A DNA stretch of 64,000 nt. Origin: Podarcis erhardii (taxonomy: Eukaryota). Positions 1,901 to 14,310 of the stretch are shown one piece after another; position 1 is the stretch's first letter; each line of letters starts with the position of its first letter. The notes below the pieces were generated by a model, which saw only the letters and a program-made list of their open reading frames with translations, had not been told where the DNA came from and ran no database searches. The stretch lies in assembly GCA_964252035.1 (NCBI GenBank), contig OZ176201.1; one strand, 5' to 3'. Both the position numbers and the translations under genes were made by a program.

Positions 1901-1959
1901 CCTAATTTGCAATCGCGATCATCGTGTATTCATGAGCCGCCATGCATATGAATATGCAT

Positions 1960-2650
1960 AAGGCAAGCAGGGGATCTCCCTCCCTCCGCAGCTGACCAGG
2001 CCCCGACCACGCCTTCTGCGTCGCTCCTGCCCGAGACGCTGCGTAGTCCCTCCTCCGGCCGCTAGGTGTAGCCTTCCGCCTGGAGGAGAAGGGCAAGGCG
2101 AGCAGGCCGGCGGCTTCTTCTTCTGCTAGGCCCCGTGGAAGCGGGGCGGGGAGGCTTCGCCGTGGCGCCATTCGCTCCGAGCCAGCCGGGTCGAAGTGTG
2201 TCGCAGGGGGCGGGGGAGGAGGCAGGACGCAGCTGCCGCGGAGGCTGCTAAGTGAAGGTACAGTCACGGGCCGGCCGGGCTGTCCTCTGGGCGGGGGAGC
2301 GCAGCGCTTGCCGGGCTCGCTCGCTCCCTGGCTGGCTGGCTGCGTGCAAAGCCCGTGGCTGGCGGAGGAGAAGCCTCCGCCGCCGCCGCCGCGCGCAGGG
2401 GCGGGAGATGGGCGCGGCGCCGTTGGTTGGGGGGGGCGCTCCCTGTAGGGGTTGGGGAGCTCGGACGTGGGGGAGACCAGCCGGCCAGACCCGCCAGGTG
2501 GGGGGTAGGGAGAGAGATGTGGGGGTCAGAGTTGGCTAAGAGACTCTCCCGCCTCCTCTCTGCAAGGTTTTGCATCGAAGGAAGCGAGAAGCCGAGCTCG
2601 GTTGTTGCTAAGCGCCGCGCAAACCCTTCTTTGTTTACTTCAGGAATTTT
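1960..2650. promoter_or_regulatory. CpG-island promoter of ABHD14A
   Basis: Very high GC and CpG density, GC boxes (GGGGCGGGG near 2143), candidate first-exon donor at 2257/2258; boundaries approximate. Confidence 0.8.
2150..2257 (+). other. ABHD14A: Probable non-coding exon 1 of ABHD14A (start approximate)
   Basis: No ATG; ends at donor-like GAAG|GTACAG (2257/2258) inside the CpG island. Confidence 0.45.
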
Positions 2651-3091: not shown

Positions 3092-3473
3092 ACATGGCAG
3101 ACTAGTTTGCTGAGTAGAACATGTGGGGGTTCTGGGATGTGGATGTTGGCATGTATATAATAATATGATTGCCATAACAACTGACAACTCAGTTTTGCAT
3201 CTCTCTGCATTCAGCAAAGTGTCCAGCAAGGGTTTCCTCATCAGCAGTGCCCGCTTTATGCTCCTTTTTGTGTCACTGAAGGAATTGAAGGAGGGGGAAA
3301 AGGGAAGGTGTGTATGCAAGTGGGAGGTTAAAAAAAAAAAAAGGCTTGTAAACAAGGGTGTGTCTTGCTATACTTAACCAGGCAGGAGCAGTGGGAAGCT
3401 GTGTGCTTGTCCCAGCAGGAATGGTCTCTGCTTTGTCTTGAGGTTGTTAATGTTTCCTCTTTGCTGAGGGGGA

Positions 3474-4301
3474 ATGGCTGGGGCTCAGAGGCACCCAAGA
3501 GATAGTAGCGCTATGCTCCTGAAAGACGGTGGAAGAATCCGTCGGGTGCACCTCTCTTCGTCTGTGGCAAATTCGATTCAAGAGCTGTTGGAGCAGATAA
3601 TATCTGAGCGGGATGCTTTAGGTCAAGCCCTGTCTTCTCTCTCGGCTGGACTGGCCAGACTGGAGAAGCACCTGGAAGAGACGGACCGTCGGGTAGAAGC
3701 TCTGGAAACAAAGGTGGTGTCCACGCAAAGCTGTGTTGTCAAACACTCCACTCTGATGAGGGAACTGGCAGTAGGGCGCCTGGTGGCTGACCGCAGGCTG
3801 GAGAGCCTAGAGAACAGAGTGCGAGCTCGGAACTTAAGGGTCACAGGTGTCCCAGCAGCTGTTGGAGATGTCAACCTCATTCCGTACCTAGAAAATCTGA
3901 TGCCAGCTGCCTTGGATTTAAATGGGAAGGAGGTTCCCATCTGCATTGAAAGTGCATACCGTCTCCCAGCAAAGCATGCCCACGAGGGTAGTGGCAGTAC
4001 AGTGCTAATAACTCTCTCAGATGTACGCCATCGGGAGAGGATACTGAACGCACCGTGGGCTTCCCAGACAACAAAGTTCAACGGACACAAGGTATCCTTC
4101 TTTCCTGACCTCAGCCCTGCCACGTACGCCAGGCGGAAGCATTTCGTTGCACTCAAGCAACAGTTCCTGAAGGCAGGAGCTCGGGCTTACGTCTTAAGCC
4201 CTGAAAAGTTAAAGGTGGTGCACCAGGGAAAAACCTACATCTTCAAGGACAGCAAATCTGCAGCCCAGCTGCTGGATAAAATCCAACAAGGTAGCTGGTG
4301 A
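3474..4301 (+). CDS. Stand-alone LINE-1 ORF1p-like protein (coiled coil + RRM + CTD; Transposase_22/L1TD1-like), 275 aa, intact
   Basis: Heptad-rich region followed by LENRVRARNLRVTGVP, IESAYRL, FFPDLSPATYARRKHF and SPEKLKVVHQGKTYIF, matching the vertebrate L1 ORF1p motif order; good Kozak context GGAATGG; no ORF2 downstream. Confidence 0.85.
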   Translation: MAGAQRHPRDSSAMLLKDGGRIRRVHLSSSVANSIQELLEQIISERDALGQALSSLSAGLARLEKHLEETDRRVEALETKVVSTQSCVVKHSTLMRELAVGRLVADRRLESLENRVRARNLRVTGVPAAVGDVNLIPYLENLMPAALDLNGKEVPICIESAYRLPAKHAHEGSGSTVLITLSDVRHRERILNAPWASQTTKFNGHKVSFFPDLSPATYARRKHFVALKQQFLKAGARAYVLSPEKLKVVHQGKTYIFKDSKSAAQLLDKIQQGSW

Positions 4302-4540
4302 AAGGTTATGGTGAATAAGGATAAATTGAAATCTGAGCCAGGAAGCTATGGCCCTTCTTTCTTATGATTGTGAATTTCACACTAGTGTGCAGCTTTGTTT
4401 TGGCTATCTCTGTCCCTTCTTTATTTTGAGTAAAAAGTAGTTAGTAACGGATACAAAGGAATGAAAACTAGCTAAGATTTACCATCACCGCAAGCCTTGT
4501 GAGGTATCCAATATCTTGGGATAGCTTCTGTGAAAGTTGT

Positions 4541-4925
4541 TTATTCCTGTGAAGAAAGGTTGCAGCGTTTGGGACTCTTTAGTTTAGAGAAAAGGCGAGT
4601 AGGAGGTGGCATTATAGAAGTATGCATAGCATGGAAAAACCGGATAGAGAAAAGTTTTCCTCCCTTTCTCATGACACTAGAACTTGTGGAGATCCAGTGA
4701 AGCTGGATGTTGAAAGATTCAGGACAGATAAAAGAAAGCACTTCTTCATGCAGTGCATAGTTAAACTACAGAAGTGGTGATGGGTACCAACTTAGATGGC
4801 TTTGAAAGAGGATTAGACAAATTCATGGAGAAGTCTAGCAGTGGCTACTTTCTATGGTGACTGTGCTGTGCCTCCACACTTTGAGGCCGTACTGCTTCTG
4901 AATACCAGTTGCTGAAAATCGTTTT
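4541..4925 (+). mobile_element. CR1 LINE 3' fragment
   Basis: Degenerate EERLQRLGLFSLEKRR ... FRTDKRKHFF typical of the CR1 ORF2 C-terminus, followed by 3'UTR-like sequence; ends approximate. Confidence 0.8.
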
Positions 4926-6957
4926 GAAACATCTTTGGAATCTGGGGTCCCTTCCCTCTTTTGCCTCCCCCTTATCAAGGTGTGTTCTGCCTCACAAAAT
5001 GTTACTGCAGTTTTCGTCATCCCTGACTGTTGGTCATTCTGGTTGGGGCTCATGGGAACAGGAATCCCACCCCTCCCTGCCCACTGTTGAGTGAGCTGCA
5101 CAGGACCTCTTGACCAGGGCTGGGGAACTGAGGGCCCACCAAATGTTAGATTCCTGCGCCTATGCTGTTTTACCAGAGCATATTGATATGACGGTTCACT
5201 CACTGACAGCTGCAATATTAGCTGTAACTACTAAACAGAACAAATATCAGTCTGCCTTCCCTGGAGAAAAGGCTCCTAAGAGTGTAGGATATCGTTTATG
5301 GTTGAATTAGCTGCTATTGTTAGAATTAAGGAAAGGGAGATTTAAGAGGCAATGCATTTACTTAAAAAATGAGCCTTTTCAATGTCTACTGGAATGCTAG
5401 GAGTTTAGGATGATGTACAGCCTTAGGCACTATAAGGCGAAGCATAAGGATAACTTTGTTTCCTATGGGAACATGTTTCCTATGGGAATAACAGCCTAGT
5501 GATAAACAAGCCAACGAAAGAGAGATACCAGCTATTCCATTTGGCTGAGAAGTTTGTATTATTTGTTACATTAGGTATATTGCATTATGCTTGTTGAACA
5601 TGTGTGTTGTGAGTCAGCAAAATAAATTTTGAAAAAACCTGGGGGGATTTGGAAAAGGTATTGGGAAGAGGCAACAGAGGGACACCTAGCAGGCTCCCTC
5701 TGGATGGGTATGAGAATGGTGGGTTGCAAATGGGGAGAGAGAAAAGAGGATTGAGTTGTCACCTTTTCACTAACAGATCTCCTGTGCATTAATAACTGTG
5801 TGAGTCGCTGCTGAATTTCTGCATTCATTAACATAGAAATCCAGTAAACTGGGGAGTGAAACGCATTTCTGAATTTCTGCCGGTTGTGTGGCTGATAAAA
5901 ACATGATAGGCCAGCCTTCTAGACGGACCTTGACCACTGTGCTGGGGAAGAGACATGGTGCAATATACATTCTTTTTATTAATGGCAGGTTGTCAGTGCC
6001 AGTTGCAGGTTTTGGAGAGCTCTCAGTCAAGTTATCATTAGTCCCCTGCCTCTTAGTCCAGGCCCAACCTTCTCATTGTTTCAAGCTGCTGCTGTACTTC
6101 TTTTCATTTTTACTATGTTCTCATCTGCCATGGCGTGAGCAAGCAGGCAGTGGTTTGCCCTGCCCTCTGTAGGTGAGGAGCACGAGTGCAGAACTCTTGG
6201 TTGGGGCCCATTAAAAGTGTGGCCCTTGTGGCCCATGCCAGCCCACCTTTTTTCTTTGCCTGGTTTAAAATCAGAGGGGCGGCTCTTCTGAGTGCCTGGG
6301 CAAACAGTGAGGGAGTGCCATTGTGCTCATGCCCAGGTTGTGGGCTTACCAGTGGCATCTAGATGGCCACTGCAGCAAATGGGACCCAGCAGAGCTGTTC
6401 CTGGAGGATGTACTGAAAATGTGTAGAAGCAGGCTTGAAGCATTAGTAGAACTTAATTGTTCCTAAGCTGCTTGGGCAATTGCAACTTTTGGCCTCAGCC
6501 TACCCAGCTCCAGCAGGTATCGTAAAGACTTGGAGAATATCACTGATGCAGAGACAAACTTGAAGTAGCTAATGTTGAGCAAGATGAGTTGGGGCATCTT
6601 GGATTCTCTGAACCTCTCAGCAAAAGGACTAGGTTTCTGTGGTACAAAATCAGAAGAGGTTTGGGGGATATATGGTTCCTACACTGAACCCGGGTCAAAG
6701 CACCACTACCCAGTGAGATCATTTTATTATTTATTTGGAGTATGCATGCTGTTACAGAGAAGGCCACATGCCCAAAGAGAGGCTACTCTGGACACAGCCT
6801 CCTTAATCTTTCCTGAGCCTTTCCTGCAATTTGTAATCCTTGTAATCCTGCAATTTGAGTTGCTGTATAGAATTCACCTGTTTCCTTGCCTGTGTTCAAA
6901 TTCTCTGATCCTAGTGGTTCTCTTCCTTCCTTTCTGTCTCAAACTCTTTCAGAAAAG

Positions 6958-7229
6958 ATGACTATGACTTTGATCCGCAACAGGCTGGGGCTGCTCGTCT
7001 TAGGAGTCCTTGTCACCTTCGTCCTCTACCTGTTGCTGCCGGCAATCCAGCATGAGAGATTCACATCCTCGGTAGACATCCCCAAGCCAAGGGCTATGGA
7101 GGAAGAAATGAATAAGGGTCAAGGCACAGGCAACATCACCATCTTGACAGGGACAGTTCTGCAAAATCCCTCTGTTTTCTTTAGAGAAGCTGTACAGGTA
7201 CAGAAAGATGGGCCACCCTTCACTGAAAG
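6958..7229 (+). CDS. ABHD14A: ABHD14A coding exon (exon 2; acceptor at 6952/6953)
   Basis: [28 protein letters not shown]...GNITIL...FFRE; donor AAG|GTAAGC. Confidence 0.9.
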
Positions 7230-10200
7230 GTAAGCCCCCCCCCGCAACTCTGACTGTAATGAGATAAAATGGCCCTTGTCACCTTAAATAATAAACAAGT
7301 TCCATGGCAGCCTGTCCATACTGACAGTTTGCAACTGCATCAGCTTAGGTTATGATTCTAGTAGTGTGTCCTCATGCAATAATCAGACTACTAGAGACAA
7401 AACAAATTTTGACAAATTGTTCTTCCTTTGATCCAGCAGAGCATTCTGTGCCTCTGCAGATACGCAAGTGCTTGTTGACTAAACCAAGATGGCTGTTATC
7501 TAAAGCATCTTTGAATTAAAACTATCTTGGTAGCTGCACTTCTGCTGCTAAAAATGATCCTTCAGCACTTGGGAGAATAAATACATTTTGGCTTTTCAGT
7601 TACTTTTCCACTCAGAGGTGCCAAAAGATGACTGTTACAATGGTGAAGTATCCAGATCTAGACTTTACCTCTGGATCAGCTGTTTCACAGATCTTTTTGT
7701 TTCTTTCCAGCAAAGTGGAGAAATGTTCAACATAGCAATAGCCTGCTGAGTCTTGCTGATGCTGAAGTTTTCCTCCTATGTTTGTTGTGCTAACCTATTG
7801 GACTTTTCAGGTGGTAGCTTTATTGTGCAAGTCCTACTACGTTATTGCAGAAGATCCAAACACCTTTTTCCTCAGCTAGCACATTTGTTGTAAAAAATCT
7901 CATTTTTTCAGCACTAAAGAGACAGACAGACAGACAGACAGACAGATACTGTATATACTCGAGCATATGCCAACTTTTTCAGCACATTTTTTATGCTGAA
8001 AAAGCCCCCCATGGCTTATACTCGAGTGAGGCAGGTAGCAGTGGCAAAGGGATGAGCGGCCCGAAAAGAGCCCTTTCTTGACGCTGGTCCCACTGCTGCT
8101 GCCCGCCTCTCGCAAGGGCAGGCACAGTGCCTCTCCCAGCTGTGGTTGGGAGAGGCACTGTGCTGTGCTGCGCCTCTCCCCACTGCAGCTCCTAGGCCTG
8201 CTCTTGCGAGCGGCAGAGGCAGCAGCAGAGGGACAAGCAGCCCGAAAGGAGCCCTTTCTTGCCGCTGGCGCCGCCGCCACCGCCCTTGTCAGACCCAAAG
8301 CAACTAGATAATTTTATGTAAAGCTGCCGGTTTCCAAAGTTTTGTAAACTATTACCTCAGATGAGGAAATTCTTTCTCTTTCCAATATTTCACTAACAAA
8401 TCCTTGCTGTTAGTCATATAATGTAATAATTTCTCACTTTCTTTGACATGAGTTCTTATTGGTGAGCGCTGGTGGCATCAGTGGTGACGATCTGCAATCC
8501 TCATTCTCAATACCCACACCTATAAAATATTTTACTTTCATTTTTCTGTGTTGGAGAACCTGAGTACTGTTTACTATGCCACTGTATCTTAAATATGTGT
8601 ATATCCTTTGCTGCAGTCCTGTGTTACTGTGTGAACTCTCTTCCTCATTTACATTTAATTCTAGGCTGTGTGCAGCTCACAAGCGCTGGAGTGTGTATAT
8701 ACCCTCCCCTTCAGAAAATCTACTGCTTTCCCACCCCCATCCAAGCTGTCATTACTTCTGTATTTGCTGTTTGTTTCTTCATTTGCAAATAGACTATACA
8801 CTGTGTTTTCTTTTCCAGGTTGGCAGTGATCTTCCTGCATGGTCAGTCCTTCAATTCCAAAAAATGGGAAGAATTGGGGACACTAGCTTTACTTTCTGAG
8901 AATGGATATCGTGCAATAGCCATTGATTTGCCTGGTGAGAATAAGCTGCAGACTTACCCATGTTGGAGCTTTATGTGCTCTTACAGTTCATCAGGGAGAA
9001 ATAACATAAAAATGTGTGTATCTAACTTCATCGCTGGCACTTTAGTTGACAGTGAGCAAAGGTATAAGAAAAAGCACCACTTACTGTGTTCACTGAACTA
9101 CTCCCACATAACTGGGGCAGGGGTAAAGGTTTGGCATGTATGGGTGTTAGAGGTAGTACAGTGGTACCTCGGGTTACAAACGCTTCGGATTACAAACTCC
9201 GCTAACTCGGAAGTAGTACCTCGGGTTGCAAACTTTGCCCCAGATGAGAACAGAAATTGCGCACCGCCAACAGGAGGCCTCATTAGCAAAATCACACCTC
9301 ATGTTAAGAACGGTTTCGTGTTAAGAACGGACCTCCAGATTGAATTAAGTTTGTAACCCGAGGTACCACTGTACCTCATGGCAGGGACGTGTCATGCTTC
9401 TCCTGGGGTAGTTTGTCTATCTTTGGTCCCCACCCCCTACTCAGCTCTCAGCTGAGGCTCCTAGAAGCTGTCAGCATGCAACAGCAGCCACAGCCCAGGA
9501 GCAGCTTTGACTGGCCTTCTAACCATGTGAGGGTAGCTGATGGGTCTCAAACCCTCAGTGAGTTTGGGGCTTTCCCTCCATACAAAGACAAGCTTTGGCG
9601 AATTGAGCAGATGAAACCAATAGTGGGTCCAACAGTCAAGAAGGCAGTTTCTGCTCAGGATGTAGAGGAAGTGAAGGGCAGACTGGGCTAGTCAGTCTGG
9701 GAAGGTAGCCCTTCTTGGACAAGGAAAACTCTGGTCCTAAACCTTTTCTGTTTTGTGGGATATCTTCTGGAGAAGAAAAGGCTAAGGAGTAAATCCCTAA
9801 TGGCGTCTTGTGTGCCTCATTCCGGCAACTCCTGCAGCCAGGCTGGTGCCAAATGTAGTGCTGTGCTGTCCTTTGGACCACATCAGTGAGGCCAAGAGGA
9901 GGGTCTTGTTGTCTGGGCAGCCCAAGACCTCCACACACACTTCCCAGGCTTGCACCCTGGGGAGGTTACTTTGGTGCTGCTAATGCAGCGGTTTGACTTC
10001 ACCCTAGAGGGCAGATGGATGCCCTCTAAGCAGATGGATGCCAACAGCAACTGGTAAAGCAGTGGTGGCCAAACGTGGCCCTCTAGCTGTTTTTGGACTA
10101 CTACTCCCATCATCCCTAGCTAACAAGACCAGTGGCCAGGGATGATGGAAATTGTAGTCCCAAAACAGCTGGCGGGCCAAGTTTGGCCACCACTGTGGTA

Positions 10201-13200
10201 AAGGGATCCTTAACTCCTTCCCAACATGAATGCCACAGAAATAAAGGACCTGCCAATATCCCTGTCCATCAATCACATTGGGGGAAAAGTGATTGAAGTA
10301 CTGTACAAAGGCAGGCAGTTTTCTTGAGTTCCCCAGCTGTTAGACTATAACTCACATCATTCTCAGACAGCTGAGTCCAATGGCCATGAATAAGCCAGTT
10401 ATACTGCTGACTGGCAAATGGCCGCCTAGAAGATCTTCCATGAGGCCACCAGATTCCAATGATACTTTCAGTGTTCTTTGATCTTAGGACCCTAGATGCT
10501 GTTGGACTACAGCACCCATCATTTCAGGGTGCTGTGAAGTCTGTGACGAGTGAGATAAGGGGAAACTGCCTACCCATCTTTCTTGGATATATTCTTCTTT
10601 CAGGCAACACTGTTCACTAGAGGGCAATGCTTGGTCCCTGCTCAGGGATTCTTTGTTATAGTTACTCATTGCCTTGGAGATGTGACAGAACTAGCCTAGA
10701 TAAGTTTGGCTTGCATTAGAGCACAAGGTGGCTGCTAATTAGCAGTAAGCAGTGACCTATGAGTTGAAGGTGCTTTTTGCTTAGTGGTGTAAATTTTAGA
10801 CAGATCGCTGCATCTTCTCCAAAGGAAGTCAGAAGTAATCGCTAGTAAGTTCAGGTTGAAAATTAGTTGGTTTAGCAGCAAAGCCATGTAGTTATCTCTC
10901 CTTGAATGTTCAGCTTCCTTGAGTCTTTGTTTCATAGGAGCTAACTCTGCATTTTGCAGCAAACCTCAGTGTTAGTGGAGTGATTTCTCCCCCCACCCCC
11001 ACTCCACACACTTAATGCTGGTGCAGGTTCTTTAAATGACAATGATGCTTAGCATTCATAATCACTGCATTTTTGAGAGAAGGAATCAAATATGTTGGTA
11101 ATTCCTACAATAGCACTGTAAGGTAATTCAATAATATTGCTCCCATAATACTGAGAGGCTGCGACTTGTAGGAGACCACCTTATAGATTACTTGGTTGAT
11201 TTGAAATGGGGGGCGCTTGGCTCATGGCTCACCCTCTTAACCACTAAGTAACTAAAGAAACCACCACTGGCAAAGATCAATTAACTCTGTCTCTGCAACC
11301 TTCCTAAGACCCTGATTGTCCACAGGATTGGACAGAGGAAAACCATGCTATCGAGGAAAGAACCTAGATCTGTGTGCTTAACAAAGTGACGACAGTGGCC
11401 TGAGCTTGTGCAAGGCATAGTTTTCTTCACTTTGGGCAATGGGGATTGGTTGGTAAAGTTAGTAGCTGGAATCAGTCTCATGTTTTTCCACCAGTGCATG
11501 TTGATTGTTGCCTCTGTGTGTCCTGGCTGTCTAATTACCCCCGTTCCTTCTGTTTCTCAACAGGCTATGGGGAGTCCCCAAGCTCCAGCACTGTTGAGAC
11601 AGCACAAGGCCGTGTTGCTTTCCTGCAGCAAGTCTTCAAGGAGTTGGGACTCCAGCAGCCTGTTTTGATAAGCTCTTCCATGAGTGGTCGCTATTCTATT
11701 CCGTTCCTTCTGGCTAGTGGGGAGCAGCTGAAGGGCTTTGTGCCCATTGCACCTGTAGGCACCAAGGACTTCACTACTCAGCAGTATCAGCAGGTCAAGG
11801 TAAGACAGAGGGAGCTGTGTCGTGGTGTCCCTTCTAATGTTGTGACCTGGAGCTCATTTGATAAAGATATCATGGGGGCAAGTCTTAGCACACGATTCTA
11901 GTGGTGGAGCGGAAAAAGTGAATGTCAGCCTAGTCTTCGTTCACAAGTGCATCTCTCATGCTTTGAAGGGAACCTGTGTAAAACCAATAATGTGTACACA
12001 CAGCAGGTACAGAATTTGGCATAACATCTGGCATCCCAGGGAAGTTGACCTTCATTGTTTAGAAGGAAGCTTTAGGCCTGCTTGACTTTTTTTGCGGGGG
12101 GTGGGGCAGGATGGAATACATACTGGATTAAGGATAAGAAATTTGAAGGAAAATAACAGAGTTCAGTAACTTTGAGCAGCTTCCAGGCTTTTCTGCCTCC
12201 TTGGGTTTTAGTTAACCATTTTTACTTAGAGTAGATCCATTGAAATCAATGCTTATGACTAACATTATTTTTAAAGGTTCTACTCTGAGTAAAAGTTAGT
12301 TTAATACAGCCTCTTGTCTCTGTTCCTGGTTAGTCATCTTTCCCACCATTCCATTCTGTCTCTGCCTTTTGCTGCCTCTGTATTAACTCTTCTGTAGAGT
12401 AGTATCTCGGGTTAAGAACTTAATTCGTTCCGGAGGTCCGTTCTTAACCTGAAACTGTTCTTAACCTGAAGCACCACTTTAGCTAATGGGGCCTCCCGCT
12501 GCTGCTGCGCCGCCGGAGCACAATTTCTGTTCTCATCCTGAAGCAAAGTTCTTAACCCGAGGTAATATTTCTGGGTTAGCAGAGTCTGTAACCTGAAGCG
12601 TATGTAACCTGAAGTGTATGTAACCCGAGGTACCACTGTATATGGAAACAGTTTCTCTAGGTATGGAAATGTATGCTCTCTTGTTTCATCCGCCTGATTC
12701 TGGGTGCAACGCTTCTGCAGAGCAGCAGGTGCACAGGACTCCACCCAGATTACAATGAGAACAGGGTTCTTCTCTCAGTTGCACTGGCCTACCTACTCCT
12801 TACAGCAAGAGGCAGCCACTGTGGTTCCTATCGGGTGTTGCAGACAACATTTCTGACTACTGGCCATGCTGACTGGAGCTTATGGGAGATGTCATCCGCA
12901 GCATCTGGAGGGCACCTCATTTGCTACTCTTGTACATCTTTCTTCTGTGCCAACATGTTTTGTACATTTAGTCCCTTTAGTCAGTTACAAATAAAGCCTT
13001 TTACAAAGCAAGTTGCTCCTCACATGATCGTGCAGTCATGTAAGTTTGTAATAATGTATTCCTTCGGGAGATACTTGGTTCCCAACATCCTCTTCTGCCT
13101 GAAGGTCTCTAGGTAGACTTTCTTCTTTGCATCTTGGCAACAGGCACACTTGTTGAATCAGATTTATTTGGTGTACATTGAAATGCATAATTAGGAAGGA

Positions 13201-13721: not shown

Positions 13722-14310
13722 TCGTCAGGTGAGAATCGAGGGGGAATAGTACATCTGCAATTGTAAATCCCAATCTCAAACTTCCTACCAAGCTGATGAT
13801 TGGCCCCTGTAACCTTTACACTTTCAGCTAAAATGTATATTATAAGGGTGCATAGCCTTATAGTTGTTTTCAATCTGTTGCTTTTTAATGTTCTGATTTA
13901 TGTCTGCTTTTGTATGTCATCTTGAGCACTTGCTTTGGCTGGAAAGGAAGCCCAGAAATGTTACAAATAAATTTCCAGCAGAGCTTTCAAAGAAGCGCCC
14001 ACAAGTGCCCGTACATAAAAGTATGGCATTTCTTCATCCGCAGTGCTCCAGGGATTGTACTTCCCATGCTCACTTCCACCAGGCCCTTCGGAACATTACT
14101 GACGTGTTAATGTTTTGATCTTTCTAGATTCCAACGTTGATTATCTATGGAGAGCGTGATACTGGCTTGGGCACTCAGTCTCTTCAGAGCCTTCAACAGA
14201 TTCCCAAATCCAGAGTTGTCATGCTCCTTGGAGCTGGCCATGCCTGTTACCTTGATAAGCCTCAGGAGTTCCACAAAGCACTCCTGAACTTCCTTGGTGA
14301 GCTGAAGTGA
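6958..14310 (+). CDS. ABHD14A: Alpha/beta hydrolase domain-containing protein 14A; join(6958-7229,8819-8934,11564-11799,14128-14310), 268 aa
   Basis: 807-nt spliced ORF with GT-AG introns; N-terminal signal-anchor, LHGQSF, AIDLPG, SxSxS nucleophile motif SSSMSG, GERD and GHACY; adjacent to ACY1 as in mammals. Confidence 0.93.
7949..8300. mobile_element. Tc1/mariner-type MITE end with GC-rich internal sequence
   Basis: TA followed by CTGTATATACTCGAG..., with internal inverted CTCGAG motifs; second TIR not found. Confidence 0.5.
8819..8934 (+). CDS. ABHD14A: ABHD14A exon 3
   Basis: [38 protein letters not shown]; AG/GT boundaries. Confidence 0.95.
9159..9371 (+). mobile_element. Tigger/pogo-like Tc1/mariner MITE (family A)
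   Basis: 23-bp perfect TIR CAGTGGTACCTCGGGTTACAAAC, TA TSD. Confidence 0.9.
9690..10010. repeat. Probable interspersed-repeat fragment (possibly an RTE-type LINE 5' region)
   Basis: Resembles a recalled squamate repeat (GGAAAACTCTG...AAACC, GAGAAGAAAAGGCTAAGGAGTAAA); not verifiable here. Confidence 0.3.
10060..10195. mobile_element. Palindromic hAT MITE
   Basis: TIR CAGTGGTGGCCAAAC; perfect 8-bp TSD TGGTAAAG. Confidence 0.9.
11564..11799 (+). CDS. ABHD14A: ABHD14A exon 4
   Basis: YGESPSS...[15 protein letters not shown]...[11 protein letters not shown]; donor AAG|GTAAGA, phase 0. Confidence 0.95.
12397..12638 (-). mobile_element. Family A MITE, reverse orientation
   Basis: Reverse complement of the 9159-9371 type; TA TSDs. 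Confidence 0.88.
13301..13803. repeat. Near-perfect inverted duplication (arms 13301-13496 and 13617-13803) containing an L2-like tail and an (AAT)n tract
   Basis: Arms are reverse complements apart from one substitution and the microsatellite length; 120-bp spacer. Confidence 0.95.
14128..14310 (+). CDS. ABHD14A: ABHD14A terminal coding exon
   Basis: [11 protein letters not shown]...[26 protein letters not shown]. Confidence 0.95.
   Translation: MPTLIIYGERDTGLGTQSLQSLQQIPKSRVVMLLGAGHACYLDKPQEFHKALLNFLGELK

Follow-up and report, generated by a model that had tools for sequence, protein, structure and literature searches.

What is an intact reading frame from a long interspersed nuclear element 1 (LINE-1, L1) doing in the first intron of a host gene? 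The question is raised by a 64,000-nucleotide (nt) stretch of the genome of Podarcis erhardii (NCBI GenBank assembly GCA_964252035.1, contig OZ176201.1; the whole stretch is referred to below as the window), in which an open reading frame (ORF) resembling the L1 protein ORF1p lies in sense orientation within intron 1 of ABHD14A. An earlier reading of the window's letters (the original prediction) had proposed a solo, domesticated gene comparable to mammalian L1TD1 and co-opted independently in one reptile. The answer favored by the analysis reported here, at a probability of roughly 0.7, is a domesticated L1 ORF1p that was inserted in the ancestor of squamates and turtles and that most likely supplies ABHD14A with an alternative first coding exon.

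An ORF1p-Derived Reading Frame

The ORF (3474..4301, + strand) runs uninterrupted for 828 nt and encodes 275 amino acids (aa) from an ATG in the context gggggaATGG, which has G at both -3 and +4; an in-frame TGA lies upstream of this ATG at 3465-3467. The intact frame and the good Kozak context that had been described for it are thereby confirmed. A check against the Transposase_22 families, which had been suggested, came out negative: hmmscan against Pfam-A returned no match to Transposase_22, Tnp_22_dsRBD, or Tnp_22_trimer at E ≤ 1 and only coiled-coil noise. Judged by its sequence, the ORF is too diverged for the Pfam Transposase_22 models and its homology stands on other tests. The missing match is not counted against homology because matches were obtained with phmmer against the PDB, with Foldseek, and in the profile search. 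By phmmer, aa 68-261 matched the human L1 ORF1p trimer (2ykp, E 3e-4), with the ORF being about 20% identical to human ORF1p. An AlphaFold2 (AF2) model, with a predicted local distance difference test score (pLDDT) of 75, places a helix at aa 29-117, the RRM at 120-211, and the CTD at 215-272, and when this model is compared with the PDB by Foldseek, chains of the human L1 ORF1p trimer make up the ten best matches (E 4e-9). Outside the ABHD14A-linked set, the nearest relatives in the profile search are L1 ORF1p sequences of the coelacanth Latimeria chalumnae, named ‘L1 transposable element RRM domain-containing protein’ (E 1e-42). A basic pair in the family aligns with human R261/R262, a YPAKL motif is present in most orthologues, and RLESLE (aa 108-113) closes the coiled coil; these are motifs linked to ORF1p function, the last being of the RhxxhE type. 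The full coiled-coil/RRM/CTD layout that had been read from the letters is borne out by the AF2 model, Foldseek, and phmmer. The ORF is a genuine derivative of L1 ORF1p with this predicted fold, and the module is probably trimerizing and RNA-binding. Its features, and those of the 3' end discussed below, are as follows.

3474..4290, + strand: coding exon derived from ORF1p, running from its ATG up to the 5' splice site (272 codons plus 1 nt)
3558-3824, + strand: coiled coil, aa 29-117
3825-4109, + strand: RRM segment, aa 118-212
4110-4289, + strand: CTD segment, aa 213-272
4288..4296, + strand: 5' splice site AAG/GTAGCT (slashes mark splice junctions); the exon ends at G4290, with the donor at 4290/4291, three codons before the stop
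4299..4301, + strand: stop TGA of the unspliced reading (275-aa form)

In keeping with the original prediction, no ORF2 was found downstream, as the ten + strand ORFs between 4302 and 6950 are without any Pfam match. A poly(A) tail was not found in the window, and neither AATAAA nor ATTAAA occurs within 900 nt 3' of the ORF, where the only candidate signal is the variant AGTAAA already noted at 4429. The description of the ORF as balanced in composition and CpG-retaining also stands (A 26%; CpG observed/expected ratio 0.52, compared to 0.18 in the downstream intron). A single copy of the ORF was detected by tblastn in the window.

Probable Splicing to ABHD14A

The proposal that the ORF is a coding exon of ABHD14A derives from its 3' end. 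Nucleotide conservation to distant squamates ends at 4296-4305, by the donor. The sequence AAG/GTAG(C/T) is invariant in all intact species, Chelydra included, and also in Caretta, while the Phrynosoma pseudogene has GATAGC. The T of the donor GT also serves as the third position of a glycine codon (GGT) and is thus at a four-fold degenerate site. Of 25 four-fold codons whose amino acid never varies, only 2 keep their third base unchanged as well, and the donor T is one of these. When 3474-4290 of the window is joined to the ABHD14A exons, a 542-aa open frame results, with GT-AG at every junction. Compared with the Podarcis muralis model, this fusion has three amino acid differences, which all fall within ORF1p. 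When the annotated proteins from P. muralis, Chelydra, and Elgaria are traced onto their DNA, they use exactly the equivalents of donor 4290/4291 and of the exon 2 acceptor, and the frame into exon 2 is open in every species examined.

Fusion models, found by a protein search across the junction and by look-ups of clusters, are full-length, at 520-542 aa unless noted, in the squamates Podarcis muralis (LOC114591567), Elgaria multicarinata, Liasis olivaceus, Candoia aspera (“ABHD14A isoform X1”), Pseudonaja textilis, and Thamnophis sirtalis (858 aa, two copies) and in the turtles Chelydra serpentina, Macrochelys suwanniensis, Malaclemys terrapin, and Chrysemys picta; the model of Heteronotia is partial. 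The databases name them mostly “uncharacterized LOC” or “ABHD14A isoform X1.” In the Thamnophis model (P0178, LOC106546883), the ORF1p-ABHD14A unit is present about one and a half times, which reflects either a local tandem duplication or an assembly artifact. A conserved donor, conservation that ends at that donor, and an in-frame junction in the models of at least 10 species together point to an alternative 5' coding exon. From conservation and gene models, the ORF1p exon is most likely an alternative first coding exon that fuses ORF1p to ABHD14A, the exons of which are listed here.

1950..2257, + strand: ABHD14A exon 1, non-coding, inside a CpG island at about 1950-2550; donor AAG/GTACAG at 2257/2258
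6953..7229, + strand: ABHD14A exon 2; acceptor cag/AAAAGATG, canonical ATG at 6958, encodes the transmembrane anchor
8819..8934, + strand: ABHD14A exon 3
11564..11799, + strand: ABHD14A exon 4
14128..14310, + strand: ABHD14A last coding exon, stop included

The placement of the ORF in intron 1, in sense and 3' of the CpG-island donor at 2257, was correctly anticipated: an ABHD14A model of Podarcis lilfordi (P0194) traverses exon 1 and splices to exon 2, sharing the same junction (donor 2257/2258, acceptor 6952/6953). The exon 1 region has a GC content of 0.62-0.74 and a CpG observed/expected ratio of 0.78, and a gecko contig (L007, 411-509) aligns to it at window 2206-2307. In the fusion, the ORF1p module is N-terminal to the hydrophobic anchor of ABHD14A and basic residues precede that anchor, which by the positive-inside rule would place the module in the cytosol.

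Several observations weigh against this reading. First, the predicted fusion rests on computed gene models, which favor long ORFs, and on conservation. The spliced fusion was not seen in any Logan contig; contigs L001-L003 and L006-L008 look genomic or unspliced, with intron and CpG-island sequence inside. Second, the donor is without a G at +5 and is moderate by consensus, and turtle models P0167 and P0176 use several other donors inside the exon, so that the region may in part be a heterogeneous 5' untranslated region (UTR). Third, an AF2 model of the 542-aa fusion, built from an 8-sequence alignment, was uninformative (pLDDT 47.7). Fourth, lacertids carry S for the Y of the otherwise invariant YPAKL (ORF aa 242-244, nt 4197-4205), a Y that is kept in all non-lacertid orthologues and in human and coelacanth L1 ORF1p, and the window additionally carries E for A in this motif. 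Fifth, the exon has decayed in several lineages (described below) and is thus dispensable in some. Finally, a stop codon is kept 2-3 codons past the donor in lacertids, Elgaria, a snake contig (L002), contigs L001, L003, and L008, and turtles, which fits a functional unspliced product of 275 aa. At the homologous sites compared in squamates and turtles (in L001-L003, L008-L011, and L004), the stop, where kept, is variously TGA, TAA, or TAG; geckos and Varanus no longer have it. Its retention could point to an unspliced product with a function or to a second G/GTRA donor.

The alternative that survives best is, accordingly, a stand-alone domesticated ORF1p gene in which the 275-aa protein would be the only product, made from unspliced or intronically polyadenylated RNA, and the fusion models would be artifacts. 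The retained stop in most squamates and turtles, a stand-alone UniProt model from Varanus, the AGTAAA at 4429, and the lack of spliced fusion contigs in Logan would all agree with such a gene. It is nevertheless considered unlikely, since conservation ends at the donor rather than at a 3' UTR or poly(A) signal, canonical signals are missing from the 900 nt downstream, and the donor GT, invariant at a four-fold site, has been lost only in a pseudogene. Moreover, geckos and Varanus have no nearby stop and still have an intact ORF, and the frame into exon 2 is open wherever it was examined. An ORF1p-ABHD14A fusion is thus more likely than a solo gene, and both may coexist. What remains of the solo, L1TD1-like gene originally proposed is a genuine, single-copy, sense-oriented, and selected ORF1p without ORF2; its stand-alone product does not fare as well, with the donor, the conservation, and the in-frame junction favoring fusion.

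Purifying Selection and Independent Losses

Pairwise estimates of the ratio of non-synonymous to synonymous substitution rates (dN/dS, ω) by the Nei and Gojobori method (NG86) were 0.17-0.36 among seven intact coding sequences, with bootstrap upper bounds below 0.53. A codon model (GY94+F3X4) fitted to ten coding sequences gave an ω of 0.36, and fixing ω at 1 was worse by about 97.5 log-likelihood units (2ΔlnL of about 195). By domain, ω was 0.39 for the coiled coil, 0.26 for the RRM, and 0.35 for the CTD, each significantly below 1; for the body of ABHD14A, in the species pairs used for the comparison of synonymous divergence (dS), it was 0.10-0.17. Between the window and P. muralis, 14 of the 828 sites of the ORF differ, 11 of them synonymously and 3 non-synonymously. 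Divergence from P. muralis is 1.7% in the ORF and 2.7-6.8% in the flanking intron, and this lower divergence of the ORF indicates that constraint is current in lacertids. That the ORF1p exon has been domesticated and is under purifying selection on its coiled coil, RRM, and CTD is strongly supported, as the original prediction of domestication had it, and the exon is kept intact by selection in most lizards, in snakes, and in several turtles.

Decayed orthologues, which had been named beforehand together with a dN/dS near 1 as evidence against domestication, do occur in Phrynosoma, sea turtles, and Mauremys mutica; a dN/dS near 1 does not, given the ω of 0.36 on intact coding sequences. The Phrynosoma copy (L005, 10040-12868) is interrupted by two in-frame stops, lacks its middle part, and carries AT in place of GT at the donor; an assembly gap spans 11531-11630 of that contig. 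In Caretta caretta (L004, about 10628), the RRM has a 1-nt deletion relative to Chelydra, and the sea-turtle models begin at internal methionines or translate the N-terminal part out of frame. The RRM of the Mauremys mutica model is frameshifted and partly missing. The decays in Caretta and Phrynosoma are independent of each other. A small intron in the Caretta model P0011 was discarded as unsupported by the Chrysemys model.

These losses, along with the internal donors and out-of-frame readings in turtle models P0167 and P0186, are what could be expected if the ORF were an old L1 relic that is functionless or is kept as an alternative 5' UTR or as regulatory DNA of ABHD14A, its open frame being incidental. 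Such an explanation is very improbable: a frame of about 272 codons stays open in at least 17 species from both sides of the squamate-turtle split, ω = 1 is rejected, synonymous differences outnumber non-synonymous ones even between close species, and the coiled coil, RRM, and CTD are separately constrained.

Orthology and Age of the Insertion

Relatives were sought in a word-seeded search of 5.8 billion proteins, in an exhaustive profile search of 1.84 billion representatives, and in a second protein search that spanned the ORF1p-ABHD14A junction. The word-seeded search found only 12 relatives, at 61-75% identity, all of them squamate or turtle and several with models that run into ABHD14A. 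Only 12-15 clusters of relatives are present among the 5.8 billion proteins, with one contig each where contigs were counted. The profile search returned 2135 ORF1p-like matches at E ≤ 1e-3, among which the ABHD14A-linked sequences score highest; a clear gap separates them from Latimeria L1 ORF1p at 130-160 bits, below which scores form a continuum near 100 bits. No orthologue from birds, crocodilians, tuatara, mammals, or amphibians was found in the protein-set searches, a third one that used the orthologue alignment included, and unannotated or decayed copies in those genomes are possible. An ABHD14A isoform retrieved from Anolis carolinensis is without the ORF1p exon. A Latimeria model of CC2D2A (P0018, 1499 aa) contains an ORF1p-like segment at residues 734-932, which is either an intronic L1 absorbed by the gene predictor or another exonization.

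The synteny comparison that had been suggested for the interval between ABHD14A exons 1 and 2 places the ORF at an orthologous site in squamates and turtles: a single-copy ORF1p-like sequence occurs there in lacertids, an anguid, a monitor lizard, snakes, geckos, and turtles. It likewise lies 5' of ABHD14A exon 2 in Phrynosoma, P. muralis, Chelydra, and Elgaria, and in Caretta the gene order is ABHD14B (- strand), ABHD14A (+ strand) with the ORF1p-like sequence in its intron, and ACY1. In a protein tree, 17 ABHD14A-linked sequences form one clade on a long stem, with full support (100) in the Shimodaira-Hasegawa-like approximate likelihood ratio test (SH-aLRT), and the set of coelacanth L1 ORF1p sequences is sister to it. 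Within this clade, turtles and squamates are separate, with one cluster each for geckos, lacertids, anguimorphs, and snakes, so that it resembles the species tree. In three species pairs, dS of the ORF1p exon and of the ABHD14A exons was 1.25 and 1.23, 0.53 and 0.52, and 1.11 and 1.05, respectively. This equality suggests a single ancestral insertion inherited with the gene, as repeated insertions would not produce it. Because squamates and turtles share the insertion, it predates their split, which Kitao, Ichiyanagi & Nakagawa 2025 (PMC12129022) date to about 280 million years ago. From the shared synteny, the equal dS, and the single clade, we infer that L1 ORF1p entered ABHD14A intron 1 at least about 280 million years ago. 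The idea of an independent co-option in one reptile has thus given way to that of an old insertion, while single-copy status holds, within the window by tblastn and elsewhere as one contig per protein cluster where counted.

The ORF might instead have been an ordinary copy of an active or recently active L1, its low dN/dS reflecting selection on the transposon lineage; the ORF1 of active L1 is itself subject to purifying selection, and lizards carry many low-copy L1 families. This reading is ruled out for practical purposes by the orthologous locus and by a dS equal to that of host exons. It is further at odds with a single clade mirroring the species tree, with the missing ORF2, with a low copy number (one copy in the window, one contig per cluster where counted) in place of many dispersed, near-identical copies linked to ORF2, and with a nearest transposon ORF1p as distant as that of the coelacanth.

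The Upstream Region

Conservation also extends 5' of the ORF. Alignments to distant squamates begin at window 3195-3340, about 130-280 nt before the ATG, and comprise the following features.

3195..3473, + strand: conserved non-coding region 5' of the ORF; promoter/5' UTR, or intron end with acceptor
3348..3364, + strand: near-invariant 17-nt block GTAAACAAGGGTGTGTC, conserved in 12/12 aligned species, turtles included
3404..3418, + strand: candidate 3' splice site CTTGTCCCAG/CAG/, with AGs at 3414-15 and 3417-18
3453..3468, + strand: candidate 3' splice site with pyrimidine tract TTTCCTCTTTGCTGAG/; the exon would begin at 3469

Turtles differ from the 17-nt block by one T/C change and the Phrynosoma pseudogene at two positions. 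The letters of the block suggest a forkhead-type core with a CACCC-type box behind it. The candidate acceptor at 3404..3418, which the original prediction had listed as acceptor-like sites at 3415/3418, recurs as a block conserved among squamates, is partly conserved in Chelydra, and is absent from Caretta. Of the second candidate, TTTCCTCTTTCCTGAG is conserved in squamates; its turtle counterpart is another sequence, also pyrimidine-rich, with an AG directly before the ATG, and turtles have a GC-rich island immediately 5' of the ORF1p exon. The exon may thus be transcribed from its own promoter, or else be spliced from exon 1. An upstream in-frame extension in Chrysemys isoform X1 was considered as conserved coding sequence and rejected, since Chelydra has stops there.

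Other features of the locus lie on either side. A (CA)n microsatellite occupies 1858-1898, immediately 5' of the ABHD14A CpG island and exon 1. The lacertid from which the window comes is about 5% diverged from P. muralis, with which it shares a segment at 4540-4860 (+ strand) that is not shared with distant species; the translation of this segment (...TDKRK.FF...) resembles the C-terminal tail of a CR1-type LINE ORF2, and the segment was probably inserted later, 5'-truncated and without relation to the ORF1p exon. In a lizard contig (L001, 2961-4009, + strand), fragments of a LINE reverse-transcriptase-like ORF lie about 1.8 kb 3' of the ORF1p exon; they are not at that position in other species and look like a species-specific insertion.

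A Proposed Mechanism

In the fusion model, an L1 would have inserted in sense into ABHD14A intron 1 in the common ancestor of squamates and turtles, its ORF2, tail, and target-site duplication would since have vanished, and its ORF1 would persist as a single-copy host sequence. Translation would begin at 3474, and donor 4290/4291 would be spliced in frame to exon 2 at 6953, yielding a 542-aa product with a cytosolic ORF1p module followed by the signal-anchor helix and the alpha/beta-hydrolase domain of ABHD14A. Transcription could start at a promoter of the exon's own, marked by the 3348-3364 block, or else at the CpG-island promoter of ABHD14A, in which case 2257 would be spliced to an acceptor at 3415/3418 or 3468. 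Unspliced RNA would give the free 275-aa ORF1p-like protein, and both products may arise. Candidate roles would include tethering of RNA or ribonucleoproteins (RNPs) to a membrane, oligomerization of the hydrolase, and action on L1; the original prediction had put forward RNA regulation or L1 restriction as possible functions.

A more speculative extension, which we regard as doubtful, is a ‘stop-or-splice’ device in which a donor set three codons before a retained stop would let one family of transcripts yield both a free, trimeric, RNA-binding ORF1p-like protein and a membrane-anchored form joined to a luminal hydrolase, under a tissue-specific, forkhead/KLF-like promoter conserved for about 280 million years. 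If it were true, the anchored form would hold RNA or L1 RNPs at the membrane or would trimerize the enzyme.

Comparison With Known Systems

L1TD1 was long held to be the sole host gene derived from L1 ORF1 (PMC4161310, PMC11014241). Recently, Lyosin was described as a fusion of ORF1p to MYL4 that predates the sauropsid radiation (Kitao, Ichiyanagi & Nakagawa 2025, PMC12129022), and ORF1p fusion isoforms of RFX5, NUP42, and USP4 were reported in the same study, which screened RefSeq isoforms against Dfam ORF1p at E<1e-10 (PMC12129022). The main text of that study does not name ABHD14A, and no paper linking ABHD14A to LINE-1 or to transposon exaptation was found in the literature searched.

The ABHD14A exon shares with the ORF1p of autonomous L1 (human 2ykp, Latimeria) the predicted coiled coil, RRM, and CTD fold, the basic pair, YPAKL in most orthologues, and RLESLE. 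Unlike an autonomous L1, it is without ORF2, 5' UTR, tail, and target-site duplication and is single-copy at a fixed locus. As with L1TD1, it is an ORF1p-derived host sequence that has kept its RNA-binding modules and has been lost repeatedly (McLaughlin et al. 2014, PMC4161310). However, L1TD1 is a separate, unfused, eutherian-restricted gene at another locus (PMC4161310), and in the ABHD14A exon a conserved donor precedes the stop. Orthology with eutherian L1TD1 was rejected on account of the ABHD14A-intron locus and of relatives confined to squamates and turtles. L1-RFX5 of catfish, NUP42-L1 of Afrotheria, and USP4-L1 of Carnivora are similar in having an ORF1p-like exon as first (RFX5) or last coding exon but are younger and belong to other clades and other host genes (PMC12129022).

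Very few host proteins are known to derive from L1 ORF1p, namely L1TD1 and the four fusion isoforms of 2025, and the ABHD14A exon adds an old and well-conserved case. It is apparently the first complete coiled coil-RRM-CTD module joined to a membrane-anchored enzyme. Natural intact copies (Podarcis, geckos, snakes, turtles) and natural knock-outs (Phrynosoma, sea turtles, Mauremys mutica) make it a tractable system in which to study a host role of ORF1p, and the deeply conserved upstream element is testable as a promoter. The case also indicates that divergence-limited screens against Dfam ORF1p miss such exons.

The closest parallel is Lyosin. Both are alternative first coding exons (predicted, for ABHD14A) that derive from L1 ORF1 and are spliced in frame to host exons, both have an origin at least about 280 million years ago, purifying selection, and independent losses, and both are too diverged to be recognized as repeats (PMC12129022). 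They differ in host gene and locus, and the partner of the ABHD14A exon is a membrane-anchored hydrolase rather than an EF-hand protein. Whereas the ABHD14A exon has the whole coiled coil-RRM-CTD module, Lyosin is without the CTD (PMC12129022). The distribution of the two differs as well: the ABHD14A exon is intact in snakes, where Lyosin has been lost, and is unseen in the bird and crocodilian protein sets, where Lyosin persists (PMC12129022). A deeply conserved non-coding block lies upstream of the ABHD14A exon but none was found for Lyosin, and ω is 0.36 for the former compared to the 0.41-0.54 reported for the latter (PMC12129022). As far as could be found, the ORF1p-ABHD14A exon, though present in database models, is thus an apparently undescribed exon of the same kind as Lyosin.

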